A program made the translations under genes and the position numbers. From Guillardia theta CCMP2712 (Eukaryota; Protista; Cryptophyta): a DNA stretch of 64,000 nucleotides. This document shows positions 6,501 through 64,000 of this stretch, in pieces. Position 1 is the first letter of the stretch, and each line of letters begins with the position of its first letter. Under the pieces are notes generated by a model. That model was not told the DNA's origin. It made no database searches and worked only from the letters and a program-made list of their open reading frames with translations. The stretch spans positions 62,001 through 126,000 of the forward strand of contig NW_005434587.1 in assembly GCF_000315625.1 (NCBI RefSeq). Reading direction: 5' to 3'.

Positions 6501-7798
6501 ATTCTTCTACCTGCTGTGATGTAGGGTCCAGTTTCAACGCTTCTTTGTACCTCTCGATGGCTTCACGCATAAATCCTTTTGCGTAATCGACACTGCAAGC
6601 TCATCAAACCATCTTCTGCGGTCACACGTAGACATCTCTTCACCTGCCACGAAGAATGCTGGCTTCGACAATCCGTGGATTGATCTTGTATGCTGCATCG
6701 GCCACACGTCTTGTTTCATCGAGCATTCCTAAATCTTGAAACACCTGAACAAGACACTTTCAGTGCCGACACAAACTCTAAATCACCTGCTTTCCTGTCC
6801 AAGATTGAGCAGCAGATTACAGTTTGTTGGACTGAGTTGCAAGCCAGTTTCAAACACTTTGCGAGCCTTTCGCACAGGTCAGCGCACACAGTGTAAGAAT
6901 CGTGCGCATACACCTCTCTCAACCATCCAGACTGTCTCAGAGCGTTGCCTAGATTGTTTCGAGCATCTTCCAACGAAGGATCGATGCTTCATGAGCGTCA
7001 GCACGTCAACCAGGAGCTCATGACCTACCGGATCGCGGAGCTGAACATGGCGATCGCCTCATCCATCCTCCTCTCATCGAAGAGCAGGTTCCCGTAGCTG
7101 TACCTGTACCGCGATGACGTCGGATCCAGCCGGATGGCTGCCTTGTAGTTCATCTCCGACTGTTTCCGGAAGTGGCTGCCTTGCTCGCGCAGCAGAAGGC
7201 CGAGGTTGAAAAATCCTTCAGCGCACTCCTCCTGCTCCAGCAGAGCCACGATGCCCTCCTCCCACACCTCGCGGGCCTGCAGAGGCTCTCCGAGGTTGTA
7301 GTATGCCTGCGCAAGGTTGCGATAGACGGCGACAGACGTTGGCTGGAGGCGCTTAGCGACGGCGAAGCTGTACAAGGAGGTCTGAACATGGTTGCTTTCA
7401 AGCTGAATCACCCCGCGGATCAAGGCGCCTTGAAACCACTGCTCTATGGCGTCAGAAGACGCACTCTCGATGTACTTGAGCGCTTGTTGGATGTCTCCCG
7501 CCTGCCTCGTCACGATGGCAAGGTTGTAGAGGACTTGAGCTCGGCTCATGTCGTTAGGAGCCTGCTGCAGAGCTACTTGGAGACAGGATTTCGCTCCTGC
7601 GACGTCAGAGTTCAAGAGCCTTGAAGCATGGAGAAGTAGCTTCTCCAGGTCCGAATGATCTCTCTTGCTCAGTCCCGGGCAGGCCAAGTTAATCTGCTTT
7701 CCCTTGGCCTTGGATTTCTTGGAGACGCCTTGGCTCAGGATATTGGCAAGAAGGATCAGCAGAACAAGTTCCAGCGCCCTCCTCCTTCTGTGCAACAT
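3501..7798 (-). CDS. TPR + GT41 glycosyltransferase (OGT/SEC-like) with N-terminal hydrophobic signal, multi-exon
   Basis: Many TPRs (VYRNLAQAYYNLGE, FFNLGLLLREQG, YSYGNLLFDERRMDEAI, ARNNLGNALRQSG). GT41 motifs KLRIAYMSTDLGDHPVGH, PAPIQV, GSHDSTGATYIDLFVSDRVATPP and LCNFNQLFK. Last exon GLKIGWDLLDSGLSYHIHVN* has its stop at 3501-3503. Confidence 0.9.
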
Positions 7799-17123: not shown

Positions 17124-18846
17124 ATGAGGGCATTCTCGCTATGCTCGCTGCTTGTGAGATTTATCCTCAGCTCAACATGGGCCGACCCACTCCGAGCATC
17201 GCACGGGGTCGACATAGCGCATGGTTACCATCCCAGCAGCCTGAAGCTACGAGGAGGCTCCGGTGTCTACGATGGGCTGCTGCAATCAGCCCCCGGACTT
17301 GGTGAAGTGAGCGAGTACTTGGAGGGTTTAGCTCCACTGGGGGACACCTGCGGAGACCCGGCCAATGTGCCGGCAGACATAACCAGCAACCAGTTCTTGG
17401 ACTCCTTGAACCCACAGTCACTGTACGAGCTGATAGGAAGTGAGAGGCCTGAGTCTGAAGTCGGGATTGATACCCCTGAATTTCAGGCGCAGGGGCGAAA
17501 CTTTATCAAAGCGCATACTATAAGGGGAGCATTGATGTTCCTGGAAGACAGCAAATTCTTCGTTCCCTTTGTCAAGGCCATCTTCAACAAGTTCGATTCT
17601 AACCAAGATGGCTTCTTGTCGTTCGAAGACTTCCAGGAGCTGCAGTTGTGTACCGAGCCCGGTATTGAGCTTGGAGAGAAGAATCTGACGGAATGGGAGG
17701 AATTTTTGAATGAAACAGAGGACAGCCTGGAGACAGGAATGAGCTTCTTCGGGTTGTACAGGCTGTATCAGTCAACAGGGCAAGATGTCATTCAAGACTG
17801 TCAAGTGGTCTTTGGCGACAAGTTTTATGATATGTTTCCCTACGCGAGATGGCTGTTCGATAACCATACCATGAGCAACGACGAGGATCAACCAGCTTGC
17901 AATGGGTACAAACGCTGGCAGCTTGAAGACATTGATGCACCTTTGACAGAAGACGTGTGGGATATAGGGTTAGCAATATGTTCTTCCCCTGGATCGAATG
18001 AGGCTGACGCCTTGCGCAGGGATCTAGAATCTTGTGTTCGGCCCGAAAATTCCTTCTGGCACGAGTGGAATTGGAGTAAGTGATTGTTCCTCTCTTCATA
18101 TATACGTTTTCTCCTATGCTTGCCTGACTCAGATTGTCCTGCTTTCTTATGAACTGATTCTTCGCCAGCAAGCTTCGACAATCGAGCATTGCGAGATTTC
18201 TTCTTTCAGGTGCATTCGACTGTTTTTATCACAAGATGAATTCTTCAGACAGTATTCCCTGGAAGCACAAGTGAAGCAGCGACCTTCACAGGGGATTCCG
18301 TACGATCCTCCTCTGCCTTATGACGGCAAAGTGAGATTATTGTCCTCTCTGCTCACCACGTTGAAAAGTTTTACAATAGACGCTGTTGCGTGTGCCAATG
18401 GACCCCATCCTTCAATTCAACGAGGTATGCAATGGTGCTCATATGGAGGAGGAGAAGAAAGGCAGGGGGTGGGGGGGATGGAGGGCGAGGGCGAGAGCGA
18501 GGAGGGAAGTAAAGAGACGAAAGCGGAGACGAGGATGAGGATGAGGGTATGTAGTTTAGGGTATCTTAACAGTAGGAGATTGTTAGTTGCAGCAGACATA
18601 TTTATGCTGCTATGAGTGGGAGGGAGAAATGTTGTGTGTAAAGTGAAGGAGATGCGATGACTTCGTTTGCACGCAGACTCAAAATGACTTCTTGGAGAGA
18701 TCTCCGATGCCAACGGAGCTATGGGATTATTGTGTGTTTGATCTCTTTGATATACCTGACAAGGTGTTGACGGTTCTGCATTTGAACAGTCCAAAACAAA
18801 TCGAATTATCTTCAATATAATGAACCCAAGTTTGCAAGCCTCATGA
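17124..18846 (+). CDS. Signal peptide + KLRGG motif + EF-hand-containing acidic protein; 3' exons approximate
   Basis: Starts MRAFSLCSLLVRFILSSTWA, with SSLKLRGG at aa 38-45 and the EF-hand IFNKFDSNQDGFLSFEDFQEL. The long first exon ends at a GTAAG donor near 18077; further short exons follow. Confidence 0.7.
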
Positions 18847-21800
18847 CCAATCTGGATAATTCGTCTTCTAGCGAAGTGGACCACCTGCTGTCTAGCCTCT
18901 TCCCAGACGAAGAGAGCAGAAGACGATACAACGAGCAAGGAGACATGTACTATCAGATTGACAGAAATTCGCACAGCACTGGAGCTGATCAGGACAACAC
19001 CCTCGTCATAGAGGTGACTCGTCTCCGCTGCTTGTGATGACGATGTCGTTTGATTGTTGTTGTGAAGGGTGGGGGACATCTGAGCCGCATGGAGATGGCA
19101 CGGAAATACAGCTTGTGCGTTCTGCTCCTGCTCCTGCTCCTGCTCCTGCCCCTGCTCCTGCTCCTGCTACTCACCAGCTTCTGCCGCTTTCACTCACACT
19201 GCTCTTGCTCTTGCTCTTCTACAACGCTCCGTTTGCGTCTCGGTGATGGGAAATTTGTAGTGGAGATTTCGACCCCGAAGTGCTGGAAAAGGAGGGGGTC
19301 AGTGTAACGTGAGTTTGATACCTCAACTATCAACTGACCATCTCGTTCTCCATCTCCGGCTCGCTTCCTCCTTTCCGCCTCCTCTCGCCCTCCTTCCATG
19401 CTCTTCCTCGTTTCCTGCGCTCCTCATCTTCAACTTCTTGATCCTCGTCGTAACTTCCCCCATTCTCCGTCCACATTCCCTTGCCTTCTTCTTGTCTCTC
19501 TTCTCTACATCCTCCTGCTGAACGGGCGTCTTTCTTCAGGGAGCCTCTTCCCATGTGCTGCGATGGAGGCCCTTGGGTCTACGAGCGGTACTCTCTCTTC
19601 CACTTCTGCTCTTCCTCCTCCTCCTCTGCTCTCCTTGTAGTCTCTTCCTCTACTCCAATCTGGTTGCCCTCGTCTTCGTCCTTTGCTCATTGAGCCCCCA
19701 GGAAGCCGAACTCGAGACGCCTTGGTCTTAGTGGAAAGATGGACCCTTGGGACCCTAACTCCCCTGCCGTCTTTCCGCAAGGTGCTCCTATCATACAGTG
19801 TTCTTCTCCTACGTTCCGTTGCTTTTCTCCTCTTTCTTCGAGCCCCCGTCTTCCTCCTCCCTTCGCGCCCCCCCCCCTTCGTGCTCTCCCCTACCTCCTG
19901 CTTCTTCCTGTCCGTTGCTCTTTCCGCTGTCCTCTTGGAATGCATTGCCCTGCTTCCATCTCCTCATGCAGAACAGACACCGGCTCGAGTTGGATGTCGC
20001 GCAAGGGAGGAGGAGGTATCCAGTCATCCTTCGCCAACACCGACAGGAGGATGGCGTTCAAGGTCAGGGCAACGCAGAGGCCATGCAGACACTCAAGGGA
20101 CGCAGATCCTGATGGCGGGGCCTGACGGAGGTGGGAAGAGCTCGTTGCTGTTCGCCTGGAAGGCAAATGAGGTGATAGACGTGCAATGGAAGAGAGTTCG
20201 GAAGACTGCAGGATGAGAGGAAGTGAGGAGAGTAGAGCAGAGGAGGAGGAGGAGAAGGCATTGATGTGATGTGCTGATCAGGCTCTGTCGGAGGCCGGGC
20301 TAATGCCTGCTCCTACTCTCCTGACTTTCAACGTAGAGGAGGTCTGCAATTTCTCCTGTACCTCCTCCATCTTTGCCTCCTACTGGACGAATTTCAGTTT
20401 GACTTGCTCTCAACCATCTTGCCAAAAATGAAAGAAACACGTGCAACAGTTTTCTCCCATCCTAGANNNNNNNNNNNNNNNNNNNNNNNNNNNNNNNNNN
20501 NNNNNNNNNNNNNNNNNNNNNNNNNNNNNNNNNNNNNNNNNNNNNNNNNNNNNNNNNNNNNNNNNNNNNNNNNNNNNNNNNNNNNNNNNNNNNNNNNNNN
20601 NNNNNNNNNNNNNNNNNNNNNNNNNNNNNNNNNNNNNNNNNNNNNNNNNNNNNNNNNNNNNNNNNNNNNNNNNNNNNNNNNNNNNNNNNNNNNNNNNNNN
20701 NNNNNNNNNNNNNNNNNNNNNNNNNNNNNNNNNNNNNNNNNNNNNNNNNNNNNNNNNNNNNNNNNNNNNNNNNNNNNNNNNNNNNNNNNNNNNNNNNNNN
20801 NNNNNNNNNNNNNNNNNNNNNNNNNNNNNNNNNNNNNNNNNNNNNNNNNNNNNNNNNNNNNNNNNNNNNNNNNNNNNNNNNNNNNNNNNNNNNNNNNNNN
20901 NNNNNNNNNNNNNNNNNNNNNNNNNNNNNNNNNNNNNNNNNNNNNNNNNNNNNNNNNNNNNNNNNNNNNNNNNNNNNNNNNNNNNNNNCCATGGCAAACT
21001 TCTTCGAGTTCAAGCTCCCTCCCACGTCAGTCGCTCCTCCCCCTCTCTCCCCTCTTTCTCCTCCTCCCCTCCTCCTTACACAAGCTTCCTCTTCCTTCCT
21101 CCTCTACTCCTCCTCGCCCTCTGCTCGTCCTCCTACCGCTCGCTTCCTCTCCCTCTCCTTCACCTCCTCCACGCCCTCGCCTCCTCCTTCTGCTCGTTCT
21201 GCCAACACAACTTGTTTTGCCCTACCCTCTCTTTCGGGTCCTCTTCCTAGAATCTCCTTTCACCATTATCACCACCGCCCACTCGCAACCTCCTCCTCAT
21301 CTTCTCCTCCTCCTCCCTCCTCCTCCTCCTCCTCCTCCTCCTCCCTCTCCTCCTCCTCCTCCTCCTCCTCCTCCTCCTCCTCCACTACCACCACCACGCT
21401 GCCATCCATTTCATCGTTCCCTCTCACCTCATCTACGGTAACTCGTGTGTAGATTTTTTCTGGCCTAGAGCTCGAAAGGGTTCCGGACGCAAGGATGTTG
21501 AGCCTCGAGTCAGGGCAAAGGTGATGCGGAGCCTGAAACTTGCTCCTCTTGCTTCTTCTGCTTCTTCTGCTCCTGCTGCTTCTTCTGTTCCTCCTGCTTC
21601 TCCTGCTTCTTCTGCTTCTTCTGTTCCTCCTGCTTCTCCTGCTTCTTCTGCTTCTTCTGTTCCTCCTGCTTCTCCTGCTTCTTCTGCTTCTTCTGTTCCT
21701 GCTGCTCCTCCTGCTTCTCCTGCTTCTTCTGCTCCTTCTGTTCCTCCTGCTCCTCTTGCTCATCCCCTGACTCACACCACTCTCTCCATTTCCATGTTCT

Positions 21801-22559
21801 CATGCTGCTCCCCTTTTTGCTCCCTTTCTCCCTGGTACTCCGTTCCTCCTCTCCGTTCCTCCTCTCCGTCCCTCCTCTGCCTTCTTCCTCTGCCTTCCTC
21901 CTCTGCCTTCCTCCTCTGCGTTCCTCCCTCTTGGCACTCCTTCCTGTTCCACGCTGTCACTTGTTAATTGACGCTTCTTTCTTCTTATTATCTTCGTCTT
22001 TTTGTCTTTCCATTCTCGTCCTTTCAGTCCTGTCAGTCTATTCGACCCTCATGTGCGGGTACCTCGACTTGTTCAGCTCCAAGCAGGTTCGCTGATCCCT
22101 TCTTGGCCTCCTCTCCCCCTCCTCTCCTCCTCTCCTCCTCTTTCCTTTCCTCCCTCTCCCTCTCCTCTCCCTCCCTTTCCTCCCCGCTCTCGCTCTCGCT
22201 CTCGCTCTCGCTCTCGCTCTCGCTCTCGCTCCTTCTCGCTCTCCCCCCCTCCTCTCCTCCCCCCCCCTTTCCTTTCCTCTCCTTCCTCCCTCTCCCTCTC
22301 TTTCCTCCCCGCTCTCGCACGCTGGCTCTCGCTCCTTCTCCCTCTCCTCCTCTCCTCTCTTTCCATCTTCCCTTCGCCATCTCTGTATCCCTCCTTCCTC
22401 GCTCTTCCTCTCTCTCCACTCCTCCGCCCCCTCCCTTGCCTGTTCATCTGGTTCTGGACTGAGCAGGTGGCAGCATCGGCATGGACAGGGCATGGAGTGC
22501 TGGACGGGCTGGAGTGGCTCTACCACCGGCTGGAAGGAGATGCTATTAGGAGCGGATGA
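18843..22559 (+). CDS. ARF-family GTPase domain protein with possible N-terminal extension; interrupted by an assembly gap and low-complexity introns
   Basis: RMAFK/ILMAGPDGGGKSSLLFAWKANE (P-loop, about 20050-20170), PAPTLLTFNVEE, IFSGLELERV and AASAWTGHGVLDGLEWLYHRL...*. The 5' end is uncertain. Confidence 0.65.
20467..20988. other. Assembly gap (N run)
   Basis: Run of N. Confidence 1.
21540..21770 (+). repeat. Pyrimidine-rich minisatellite (36-nt unit built from 9-nt subunits), intronic
   Basis: CTTCTTCTGTTCCTCCTGCTTCTCCTGCTTCTTCTG repeated in tandem. Neighbouring (CCT)n at about 21290-21385 and (CTCTCG)n at about 22186-22230. Confidence 0.85.
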
Positions 22560-50100: not shown

Positions 50101-53100
50101 GAGTCAAGCCTGGAAGTGAAGATCGATCTCTACGAGAACGAAGAGCATGCTTGGAACATCTTTACGGAGCAGAATGCTGACGATGACAGTGAAGAAGAAG
50201 TTGAAGCGTGCGGGTCATTCATCTTCAATGTTTCTGTCTCCTCTCAACCTCGCCAGATTGCAAAGGAGGCGGAGATTGCAAGTGCTGAGGACAAGAACAA
50301 AACTGTCGATGATCAAGACAACCAACACGAGGATCCTGTAGATCAGGCAGATTATCCGCACCCGCCAGCAGAGCCTGTTGAGGACAAGGACCAAACTCCT
50401 GCTGCAAACCCTCAGAAGGATGCTTTGCAGGAGATGAGGCCGAAGACTGGTCTCCACAAGCTGATGATGAGGGTAGTCACCTCCAGAGCGAGTAAGTCCT
50501 TCATCTACATGCTCATCTTCTTCGATACTATTCTGTTTTCCCTCCATGCTCCTCCCGGCATGAGCTCAAGCATGTCCAAGGCCCTCTTCACTGTCCTCGA
50601 CTTCATGATCGACTTCTTGTTCTGGCTCGAGTTCGCGCTCAAGGTGGCAGCGTTCGGGCTGTTCGGCCGACGTCTTTCCTTCTCGCAGGACTTGGAGGAC
50701 GGGCAGGTGGTGGTGAAGGTGCACAAGACGCTGATGAGAAGCGGGTCCAACATCTTCGACCTCCTCGTCCTCGTCTCCTCCATCGGAAGGATCTTCAAGG
50801 TGTTTCAGCTCGACAAGGTGGTCGGCTCGGGCCCTATGTTCCTCTTCACGCTGCTGAGGAGCCTCCGACCTGTCCGCCTTGTCCTGGGGAGCAAGTCGAT
50901 GAGGGAGATCGTTTATACCATCGTGACAGGAGCAGCGGAGGTTGTGGAGGTCATCATCATCCTCCTGGTCTTCTTCCTCATCTTCTCGGTCGTCGGCATG
51001 GGGATCTTTGCCGACAAGTTCTTCCGCTGCTCGGATTCCGAGATCGCCCTCCTCCGTACCGTGGGGCCCTTTCTCAGTGATAGGGCCAACTGTGTGGGTT
51101 CCTTCTCCTACTCGTCCTCCTCCTCTCCCTACCTCCTCCCGCGCTCTTGGTGGAACCCACAGCACAGCTTCGATGGCATGACGGAGAGTCTGACGACGCT
51201 ATTCCGCGTCATCACACTCAAGTGGCTCAACCCGCTGACCGACGCCATGGCGGCAACGGAGGTTGACATGCAGCCTGAGCAGAACCACCAGAGTGCGAGG
51301 ATGCTGTTCTTCCTCGCCTTCATCCTGTGCGGCACCTACTTCGGTCTCAACCTCTTCGTCGCCATCATCACCAACTGCTACTTCAAGGCGACGCTGGGGG
51401 GAGCAGGCTCTGAGGAGGAGATCGAGTGGATCGCCGTCAAACGCATGATCCTCGGCGCGAAGCCTGCTCGCGTCTGGCCGCCTCCTCGCAACTTCCTCTC
51501 CAGGTTCTTCCGTCGGGTTCTCCAGCACAGATTCTGGAACCTGCTCATGCTCTTCCTCACCTGCGTCAACTTCGGCCTCATCTGCTTCCACAACCTCTCC
51601 TCCTCCTCCTCCTACCTGCAAGGGCTGGAGGCCTGGTCCGTTCTCTTTCTCGTCTCCATCCTCGTCGAAGATTTCCTCTCCCTCCTCGCCTTTGGGATCC
51701 CAACTTGCCTTAACGACGCGCTGTTCTGGCTAGACGCCGTCGTCCTCACTGCCATCCTCTTTTCTTCCGCCGCTTCTGGCAGCATGAAAATCTCCTTCGG
51801 GGTCCTCCGCCTCCTCCGCCTCCCCCGCCTCCTCAACTACATGCAGGTCAAGAGCTCGTACGCTACAGCTGGGGCAGTGCTGGAGACCTATTTTCTCTCT
51901 CGCGGGGAGTTCATGAAGATCATTATCCTCCTCTCGGTCCTCCTCTGGATCTTTGCGTCCGTCAGCTCGCAGGTGTTTGGGGACATCAAGTTCGGAGCAA
52001 GGATCAGCCAGACCGCAAACTTCGCCTCCTTCCCAGCAGCGTACATGACGCTCTTCCAGATCCTCTTCGGCGACGAGTGGAACCTGATGATGGACGACTG
52101 CCGGGTCGCGTTCCCCTCCTGCACCAGCTGGAAGCTCGGGTACCGCCTTCCTTCCGGGGACACCTTCGACGACTGCGGCTCCTCCATCTCCCCTGCCTTC
52201 TTCATCCTCTTCAAGATCGTCGTCGACTTCGTAGTGATGAAGCTCTTCGTCGGCCTCATCGTAGAGAACTTCTCCTTCTGCAGGAGCCAGGCGCAGGAGG
52301 AGGGCATCCTGTCTAACGACTACATCCGCACCTTCACTGTCGTCTGGCTCAGGTTTGACCCCTCCCGCCTCGGCTGTATCAAGTTGCGAGAGCTGTACTC
52401 CTTCATGCTCCAACTCCCTCCTCCTCTCGGCCTTGCCGGGAGTTCCAAAGGATACAACCTGCAGTACCTACCTGTCAGGACGGAGCTTTCCCTGCTGTCC
52501 TCCCACAGGGTCAAGATCTCTCAGCATGCAGCTGATAGCAGGACAGGCATGCGGCTGCTCGGGCTGCAGGATCGTCTGTTGACTGCCCGTGTGGCATTGA
52601 GCGCGGGGAGGGTAGGGCTGAAGAAGGATGAGAGGATCTTTGAGCTGGTGGACGACTTTGAAGATCCGGAGACGAAGGAGAGGAGGGCGAGCCGAGGAGA
52701 CTTTGTGGTGGTCAGGACAGAGGACTTCTACAAGAGGAGCGAGAAGGCAGGAGAGAAAATCGCTGTCCTCCGAAACGGCAAGAGGATCCGCTTGCCAAGA
52801 GAGCTTCTCCGCTGGACCAGGATGCCAGGGGAGGAGCTGTGGACCTCCACGGTGCAGGACGCGGGGAGGAGGAAGTTTTCAAGGAGGGAGAAGGAGGCGG
52901 CGGTGAAGATTCAGCAGTGGTACAGAAAGGTCATCGAGCACAGGAAGGAGACAGTGCTTCGGAACGTGCACCGAGCTCGAGCACGGGCAAGGCAGATGCG
53001 CCAGAACATGGAGGTAGTAGAAGCAGGAAGCAAGTTTGGCACAGCAGATGAAGAGGATGATGATGATGAGGAGGAGGAGGAGGAGGAGGAGGAGGAGGAG

Positions 53101-63769: not shown

Positions 63770-64000
63770 ATGAGAAGGAGAAGTTCGCCGACTGTCCTGC
63801 TCATCATCATGGCAGCAGTTCTCATGTCCCTTCCTTCCCTCCAGGGGAACAGCAAAGTCCTCCTCCTACCCCTCGCTCGACGGGATCATTGTTCCCTTGG
63901 GTTCAGGTTGCGAGGGGGTAAGGACCAGGATGATGGCGAAATGGAGGGTTCGTTCGAGATGGAGGAGGAGGAGTCGATCCCCTTCATCTCTTCTGACAAG
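63770..64000 (+). CDS. 5' end of a protein with signal peptide + RLRGG motif, truncated by the window end (absent from the ORF track)
   Basis: Open from ATG 63770 to the end: MRRRSSPTVLLIIMAAVLMSLPSLQGNSKVLLLPLARRDHCSLGFRLRGGKDQDDGEMEGSFEMEEEESIPFISSDK. Confidence 0.7.
   Translation, partial: MRRRSSPTVLLIIMAAVLMSLPSLQGNSKVLLLPLARRDHCSLGFRLRGGKDQDDGEMEGSFEMEEEESIPFISSDK

Follow-up and report, generated by a model that had tools for sequence, protein, structure and literature searches.

A conserved L-R-G-G end of periplastid-type leaders in Guillardia theta, with a likeness to the ubiquitin tail

Introduction

Two unrelated nuclear genes of the cryptophyte Guillardia theta CCMP2712 encode proteins with a common N-terminal layout, in which a signal peptide and a short linker end in the motif hydrophobic-x-L-R-G-G and an acidic protein follows. 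Both genes lie in the window, the whole stretch of 64,000 nucleotides that was analysed (contig NW_005434587.1, G000:C87:62001-126000). The placement of LRGG behind signal-peptide-like starts is not chance, and the motif recurs at the end of leaders of otherwise unrelated proteins. From sequence comparison it appears rather likely that both window proteins are bound for the periplastid compartment (PPC), the remnant of the red-algal endosymbiont's cytoplasm in which the nucleomorph also lies, and that their leaders are cut after the G-G by a PPC protease that reads the tail of ubiquitin or NEDD8. The parts of this reading differ in strength: the junction is probably a cleavage site, and a ubiquitin-type protease acting on it is plausible.

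The PPC leader class is known; apparently new are its conserved LRGG end and, potentially, its processing mechanism. As cited in PMC12136025 and PMC4494062, Gould et al. (2006) describe the PPC bipartite signal as a signal peptide plus a transit-peptide-like linker whose first residue is non-aromatic. The leaders of the window genes have the same two parts, and their end is common to six published members of the class, whereas the published rule covers the first residue of the linker only. The literature that was searched, to which the original articles by Gould (2006), Curtis (2012) and Stork (2012) did not belong, contains no description of a conserved L-R-G-G at the far end of PPC leaders. 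No paper was found there that combines LRGG with 'periplastid', or LRLRGG with 'plastid', in this sense. The text describing ASAFind 2.0 (2025, PMC12136025) has zero occurrences of RGG. It gives the first linker residue as the clearest known difference, scores a window of 25 residues that mostly ends before the LRGG motif, reports periplastid prediction at 25% sensitivity and asks if several distinct signals exist (PMC12136025).

Two window genes with a common leader layout

The features of the first gene, copy 1, are as follows.

17124..17183, plus strand: signal peptide (residues 1-20), starting at the first ATG after a stop, with a hydrophobic core and a small-x-small end, T-W-A
17184..17240, plus strand: variable linker (residues 21-39), the transit-peptide-like part; predicted first residue Asp, not aromatic
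17241..17258, plus strand: L-K-L-R-G-G junction motif (residues 40-45), with LRGG at 17247-17258
17259..18274, plus strand: mature acidic EF-hand protein; the annotated protein P0001 matches the splicing
17259-17968, 18020-18075 and 18210-18274, plus strand: exons of the annotated model
17969-18019 and 18076-18209, plus strand: two short introns, with GT..AG ends read in the DNA and in agreement with the annotated model
17571-17642, plus strand: EF-hand loop (Pfam)

The second gene, copy 2, starts at ATG 63770.

63770..63847, plus strand: signal peptide (about residues 1-26), hydrophobicity 3.39 over 9 residues
63848..63901, plus strand: linker (residues 27-44; 18 residues), predicted first residue Asn
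63902..63919, plus strand: F-R-L-R-G-G junction motif (residues 45-50), with LRGG at 63908-63919
63920..64000, plus strand: beginning of the acidic mature protein; the gene extends beyond the window

The sequence-only reading had described the signal peptide, spacer, LKLRGG and acidic EF-hand part of copy 1, and an unrelated gene of the same layout at 63770; both descriptions hold, down to the position of the first LRGG. In both copies a hydrophobic core follows the Met, as expected of an N-terminal ER signal peptide by a heuristic rule, and the Asp and Asn predicted to follow the signal-peptide cut are placed by a by-eye -3/-1 rule only. The n-region of copy 1 is MR, followed by the core and by T-W-A before the likely cut. 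Its 5′ end is based on the NCBI model together with the orthologues described below.

The open reading frame from ATG 17124 is 95% identical, over the unspliced length, to GUITHDRAFT_115674 of G. theta CCMP2712, a 321-residue protein annotated as 'EF-hand domain-containing protein'. The part after the G-G has 17 Lys plus Arg against 51 Asp plus Glu and a pI of 4.1. Residues 150-173 form a single EF-hand with a canonical loop, scoring 26.6 bits for PF00036, whose cut-off is 25.4. The linker ahead of the motif is short, His-rich and of net charge -1, and is not a textbook transit peptide. A search of the protein atlas with copy 1 returned generic EF-hand neighbours only and no function beyond the EF-hand. 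The AF2 model of copy 1, built from 12 sequences, is poor (pLDDT 46), the EF-hand being modelled best. If the favoured reading is correct, copy 1 would be a calcium-binding PPC protein limited to cryptophytes, and its mature form, released by a cut after the G-G, would begin SGVY.

The mature parts of the two copies are unrelated to each other. In copy 2 the stretch after the G-G is very acidic, with a net charge of -18 over 50 residues; a mature protein released there would begin KDQDD. Beyond the window (G000:C87 from 126001) the gene runs on in large open reading frames with weak TPR matches. Its exon 1 gave no match in a search for leader orthologues. Exon 2 has one metagenome relative of 92% identity (P0042), whose contig ends short of the leader.

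Conservation of the leader end

Orthologues of copy 1 recovered by a HMMER search comprise one protein of the cryptophyte Baffinella frigidus (KAJ1486299) and others that are metagenomic. L-R-G-G is invariant in all seven that have a leader. The sixth position before the presumed cut is Leu or Trp, and the fifth is free (K, S, P, A or R). The leaders vary in length from 40 to 65 residues, and their signal peptides are clearer than that of copy 1 and in the same place. Compared pairwise, these orthologues share 14% of their leader residues and 61% of the residues in the 60 alignment columns that follow the motif, with LRGG itself 100% identical. As the region after the G-G is conserved as well, the copy 1 family alone cannot assign the motif to the leader or to the domain behind it; it is assigned to the leader because it recurs in unrelated proteins. 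Two metagenome relatives, P0010 and P0013, have neither leader nor LRGG and may be fragments or untargeted versions; the starting Met of P0013 lies five residues past the position of the G-G.

Position of the motif in the genome

The bare [KR]LRGG pattern is not enriched in the DNA of the window, where three matches compare with 2.25 expected. Apart from the two leaders there is one match, on the minus strand at 51481, which was set aside as a chance match; it is antisense to a channel gene and has no open reading frame. What differs from chance is the position. In a six-frame reading of the window, two of seven LRGG lie 20-90 residues after a signal-peptide-like Met; the 11 other arrangements of these four residues occur 48 times, never in such a position. 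As an internal contrast within the window, a 257-residue open reading frame at 7027-7798 on the minus strand has a strong signal-peptide-like start and no RGG in its first 120 residues.

The search was extended to the G. theta assembly (87.1 Mb, 669 contigs), with signal peptides judged heuristically by a hydrophobicity rule and by eye. The LRLRGG-type DNA pattern has 353 matches genome-wide, and the first 30 in genome order were taken as an unselected sample. The sequence-only reading had expected such motifs to be concentrated behind signal peptides, and this was borne out: 16 of the 30 sit 29-60 residues after a Met with a hydrophobic core (about 19 when judged by eye), whereas a control pattern of reversed order (193 matches) follows such a start in two of 30 (Fisher p = 1.4e-4). 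For the LKLRGG-type pattern, the Lys variant seen in copy 1 (60 matches), the count is seven of 30, with one more at 93 residues. Scaled from the sample, the LRLRGG-type pattern alone marks roughly 190 genes.

Cargo and destination

The supplement of PMC12136025 lists reference proteins of the G. theta PPC with their full sequences; for six of them the location comes from GFP fusions credited there to Gould et al. (2006). All six carry LRGG at the leader end, with the presumed cut marked here by a slash.

ugg-t: SLRGG/A
EF-1alpha (identical to L017): RLRGG/G
14-3-3 (gt_96401): RLRGG/V
RRM1: RLRGG/F
CyP: RLRGG/G
Ubc8: PLRGG/A

NTRC, GLRX2, sTLP-1, hemE and iddi, which are placed in the same list only by BLAST or earlier listing, are without the motif. 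One further member of the motif-bearing group is nucleomorph-bound. At G000:C4:99826-102842 (L019) a histone H2A (E about 1e-16) stands behind an LRLRGG leader; the gene spans L019:1354-1988, its leader exon (1354-1563) ends 15 residues past LRLRGG, a phase-0 GT..AG intron follows (1564-1754) and the H2A exon begins at 1755. Of the four H2A genes of G. theta, only one is extended at the N-terminus according to Onuma et al. (2017), who immunolocalised its protein to the nucleomorph (PMC5443833). A link to periplastid proteins had been raised as a possibility from the window alone, and the six GFP-localised proteins together with the nucleomorph H2A now bear it out. The unselected genomic sample, from which L017 (eEF1A) and L019 also come, adds a starch/glycogen phosphorylase (L008, E = 3e-27), a methyltransferase and a RETICULATA-like protein to the cargo.

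Stromal leaders provide the comparison. LRGG is missing from about 20 plastid leaders of cryptophytes whose transit peptide starts with Phe (PMC12136025 set), so that the motif accompanies periplastid-type leaders and not stromal ones. Two entries of the cryptophyte plastid set do have LRGG, a fructose-bisphosphatase (FBPase) paralogue (XP_005839318.1) and a thioredoxin (XP_005829422.1), with Gly or Thr at the first position. Because the first transit-peptide residue is non-aromatic and the leader ends in LRLRGG (Appendix S9, PMC12136025), both are probably periplastid rather than stromal. In the periplastid set of the diatom Thalassiosira pseudonana (Appendix S3, PMC12136025), Der1-1 has DLRGG and TrxH has SLRGG, sSec14 and sCdc48-2 have the relaxed forms IRGG and GRGG, and the others have none; the mark may thus extend beyond cryptophytes.

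These data also bear on the view that LRGG is a coincidence, or part of an ordinary secretory propeptide, and that the window genes encode secreted or ER proteins with no plastid link. The window has as many bare motifs as chance would give, EF-hand proteins occur in the ER and the secretory pathway, and the localisation of both window proteins is only predicted. Yet the positional enrichment against controls, the invariance of LRGG across cryptophyte orthologues, its presence in every GFP-localised PPC protein listed and in the nucleomorph H2A, and a cargo of eEF1A, histone and starch phosphorylase that would be senseless in the secretory pathway make this view very improbable.

The junction between leader and mature protein

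The motif marks the boundary between the leader and the protein that it carries. In the EF-1alpha gene (L017, gt_84077) residue 2 of eEF1A is matched by the residue immediately behind LRLRGG (E = 5e-23), and the leader thus substitutes precisely for the start Met. In three of 31 collected leaders a Met comes immediately after the G-G, as though a leader had been joined in front of a former start codon. The composition changes at the same place: acidic residues make up 5% of the 20 residues before the motif and 17% of the 20 after it. The linkers of the 31 pooled leaders are transit-peptide-like, with 5% acidic, 12% basic and 20% Ser/Thr residues. The commonest form of the junction is exactly LRLRGG. 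Pro follows the G-G in none of the 31, against about 1.5 expected by chance, a difference that is not significant. In the sequence-only reading LRGG was a signal in periplastid leaders; this holds in the sense that it is the conserved end of unrelated leaders, at the leader/mature junction, and its being read by a protease is the conditional part, treated below.

A separate observation concerns L029 (1407-1628 on the minus strand of G000:C6:514938-517954), whose leader has LRLRGG at its end, with a Met immediately behind it and then a short exon. This 31-residue exon has no match in Pfam or PDB searches. Its start is reminiscent of Trm112, an assignment that was dropped as unsupported, both searches being empty.

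Resemblance to the ubiquitin tail and to other motifs

The ubiquitin-tail pattern, L-R-G-G with a hydrophobic residue sixth before the cut, is found in both copies, in the orthologues and in the published PPC proteins. The hexapeptide of most leaders is identical to the ubiquitin C-terminus (L71-R-L-R-G-G76). As in ubiquitin precursors, of which the ubiquitin-ribosomal protein fusions are an example, the presumed cut after the G-G would free a downstream protein. Two differences stand out. The fifth position before the cut is free in the leaders (R, K, S, P or A), as compared with L-A-L-R-G-G in NEDD8, and would fit an enzyme that accepts tails of both ubiquitin type and NEDD8 type. Unlike in ubiquitin, no beta-grasp fold lies upstream; what precedes the motif is a signal peptide with a disordered linker. 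Just 39-44 residues precede the motif in the two copies, of which 20-26 are signal peptide, leaving no beta-grasp fold ahead of the G-G. The search with copy 1 gave no ubiquitin match in Pfam, and its AF2 model has no fold before the motif, with low confidence there (pLDDT about 30).

Recognition of such a tail in the absence of ubiquitin has a viral parallel. The papain-like protease of coronaviruses, an enzyme of the USP fold, cuts L-x-G-G sites in a polyprotein. Here too a protease of deubiquitinase fold acts on a short ubiquitin-tail-like peptide inside a protein that is not ubiquitin, which makes tail-only recognition feasible. The system differs in being viral, in that the third residue before its cut is not fixed as Arg, and in having no role in organelle import.

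Short motifs behind signal peptides are also known from PEXEL (Plasmodium, plasmepsin V), TEXEL (Toxoplasma, ASP5), oomycete RxLR and diatom RXL, where they lie some 20-40 residues after the signal peptide. The likeness is that of a short, conserved and cleaved motif tied to a destination and often followed by acidic residues. However, these motifs read RxLxE/Q/D, RRL or RxLR, their proteases are aspartic proteases of the ER or Golgi, and they lead to export from the cell, not to a plastid compartment. In copy 1 and in most orthologues the position three residues ahead of the Arg is taken by another amino acid, against the PEXEL/RxLR/RXL consensus. A reading of this type was rejected, the fixed residues here being L-R-G-G and the cargo periplastid.

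A further comparison is with the ubiquitin machinery of SELMA, including the diatom periplastid deubiquitinase ptDUP and the Toxoplasma plastid ubiquitin-like protein PUBL, where ubiquitin chemistry drives the import step in the same compartment (PMC5487736, PMC12412216). There the cargo has genuine ubiquitin or PUBL attached to it by conjugation; in the leaders described here the tail is built into the cargo.

Processing of the leader

The favoured reading, import into the PPC followed by a cut at the junction, can be set out in four steps. The protein would enter the ER co-translationally and lose its signal peptide, as in the known pathway. It would then pass through the ERAD-derived SELMA translocon to the PPC, a destination shown for the leader class and predicted for the window proteins. 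The linker would be removed by a cut right after the G-G, a junction whose position is given by homology. Position, conservation and likeness to ubiquitin residues 71-76 make such a cut the simplest reading. Responsible for this cut would be a protease resident in the PPC and able to read the tail of ubiquitin or NEDD8. Tail-reading enzymes are present in the periplastid compartment, since it retains its own ubiquitin system and 26S proteasome (PMC5756292, PMC6559170). A candidate is the nucleomorph-encoded ZUFSP/UFSP-like peptidase (Gt2_270) described by Zauner et al. (2019), a zinc-finger protein whose peptidase domain is of UFSP type and which all four sequenced cryptophyte nucleomorph genomes have kept. 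In nuclear DNA, two matches to ubiquitin C-terminal hydrolase (Peptidase_C12) were noted, at G000:C19:490691-491686 (minus strand, E = 4e-31) and at G000:C274:18757-19555 (minus strand, E = 3e-28).

The motif might instead stay uncut and act as a mimic of the ubiquitin tail, bound by SELMA or PPC factors (an E3, Cdc48-Ufd1-Npl4 or a retention receptor) in translocation or in PPC retention. Ufd1-Npl4 and Cdc48 recognise the ubiquitin fold and ubiquitin chains, not the tail. Moreover, the motif stands exactly where homology to untargeted proteins starts, often with the original start Met next to it, and a removable leader fits this better than a retained tag. That the motif is specific to leaders not starting with Phe, and that SELMA import is ubiquitin-dependent (PMC5756292), would both suit a bound mimic. 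One exchange at the first transit-peptide residue reportedly diverts a PPC protein to the stroma, according to a statement quoted in PMC12136025; this speaks against a dominant retention signal, provided that the diverted protein carried LRGG. On this evidence an uncut tag is improbable.

If the leader is cut, the question becomes by what. Most deubiquitinases bind their substrate via the ubiquitin fold. The deubiquitinase reading is weakened by the lack of such a fold in the leaders and by the reported absence from cryptophytes of ptDUP, otherwise the obvious candidate; the 2025 SELMA phylogeny invokes 'an alternative enzyme' for them (PMC12412216). The same two points would suit a peptidase unrelated to deubiquitinases, for example of M16/SPP-like or subtilisin type, with the ubiquitin-tail likeness convergent or incidental; in addition, a separate 'TPL peptidase' was postulated alongside deubiquitinases by Cavalier-Smith (2017; PMC5756292). 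We regard this as unlikely, though less so than an uncut tag. The fixed positions of the motif match ubiquitin residues 71 and 73-76, with the full hexapeptide as the prevailing form, and the ubiquitin system and proteasome of the PPC would place tail-reading enzymes on the spot. Among the data in the N-terminome supplement of the diatom T. pseudonana (PMC3774753), none of four post-GG peptides that were sought is present.

Under the favoured reading, of a PPC protease that acts on the ubiquitin-like tail, a wider proposal can be put forward tentatively. A deubiquitinase-type enzyme of the PPC could be the sought 'TPL peptidase', in which case the ubiquitin machinery inherited from ERAD would both import the cargo and trim leaders with a built-in tail.

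Implications

The junction motif bears on which enzyme removes periplastid leaders and at which site. A fixed motif would supply a simple candidate cleavage site, and it points toward proteases that read ubiquitin tails as candidate enzymes. Periplastid and nucleomorph proteins of cryptophytes could also be predicted much more sharply, and the sample suggests about 190 genes of the LRLRGG type alone. For the two window genes a PPC location is thereby predicted; one encodes an orphan EF-hand protein of cryptophytes, the other a large TPR-like protein. If the proposal is true, the nucleus-encoded proteins of the cryptophyte PPC and nucleomorph would be defined by a sequence code, L-R-G-G, with x-R-G-G as its relaxed form in diatoms.

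Other features of the window

Pyrimidine-rich tandem arrays occupy 21289-22354 of the window and consist of CCT repeated 32 times, a 36-nt unit repeated 5.4 times, a 9-nt unit repeated 24 times and a 13-nt unit repeated 6.7 times. They account for the GC skew of -0.36 and the low GC at 20-22 kb.
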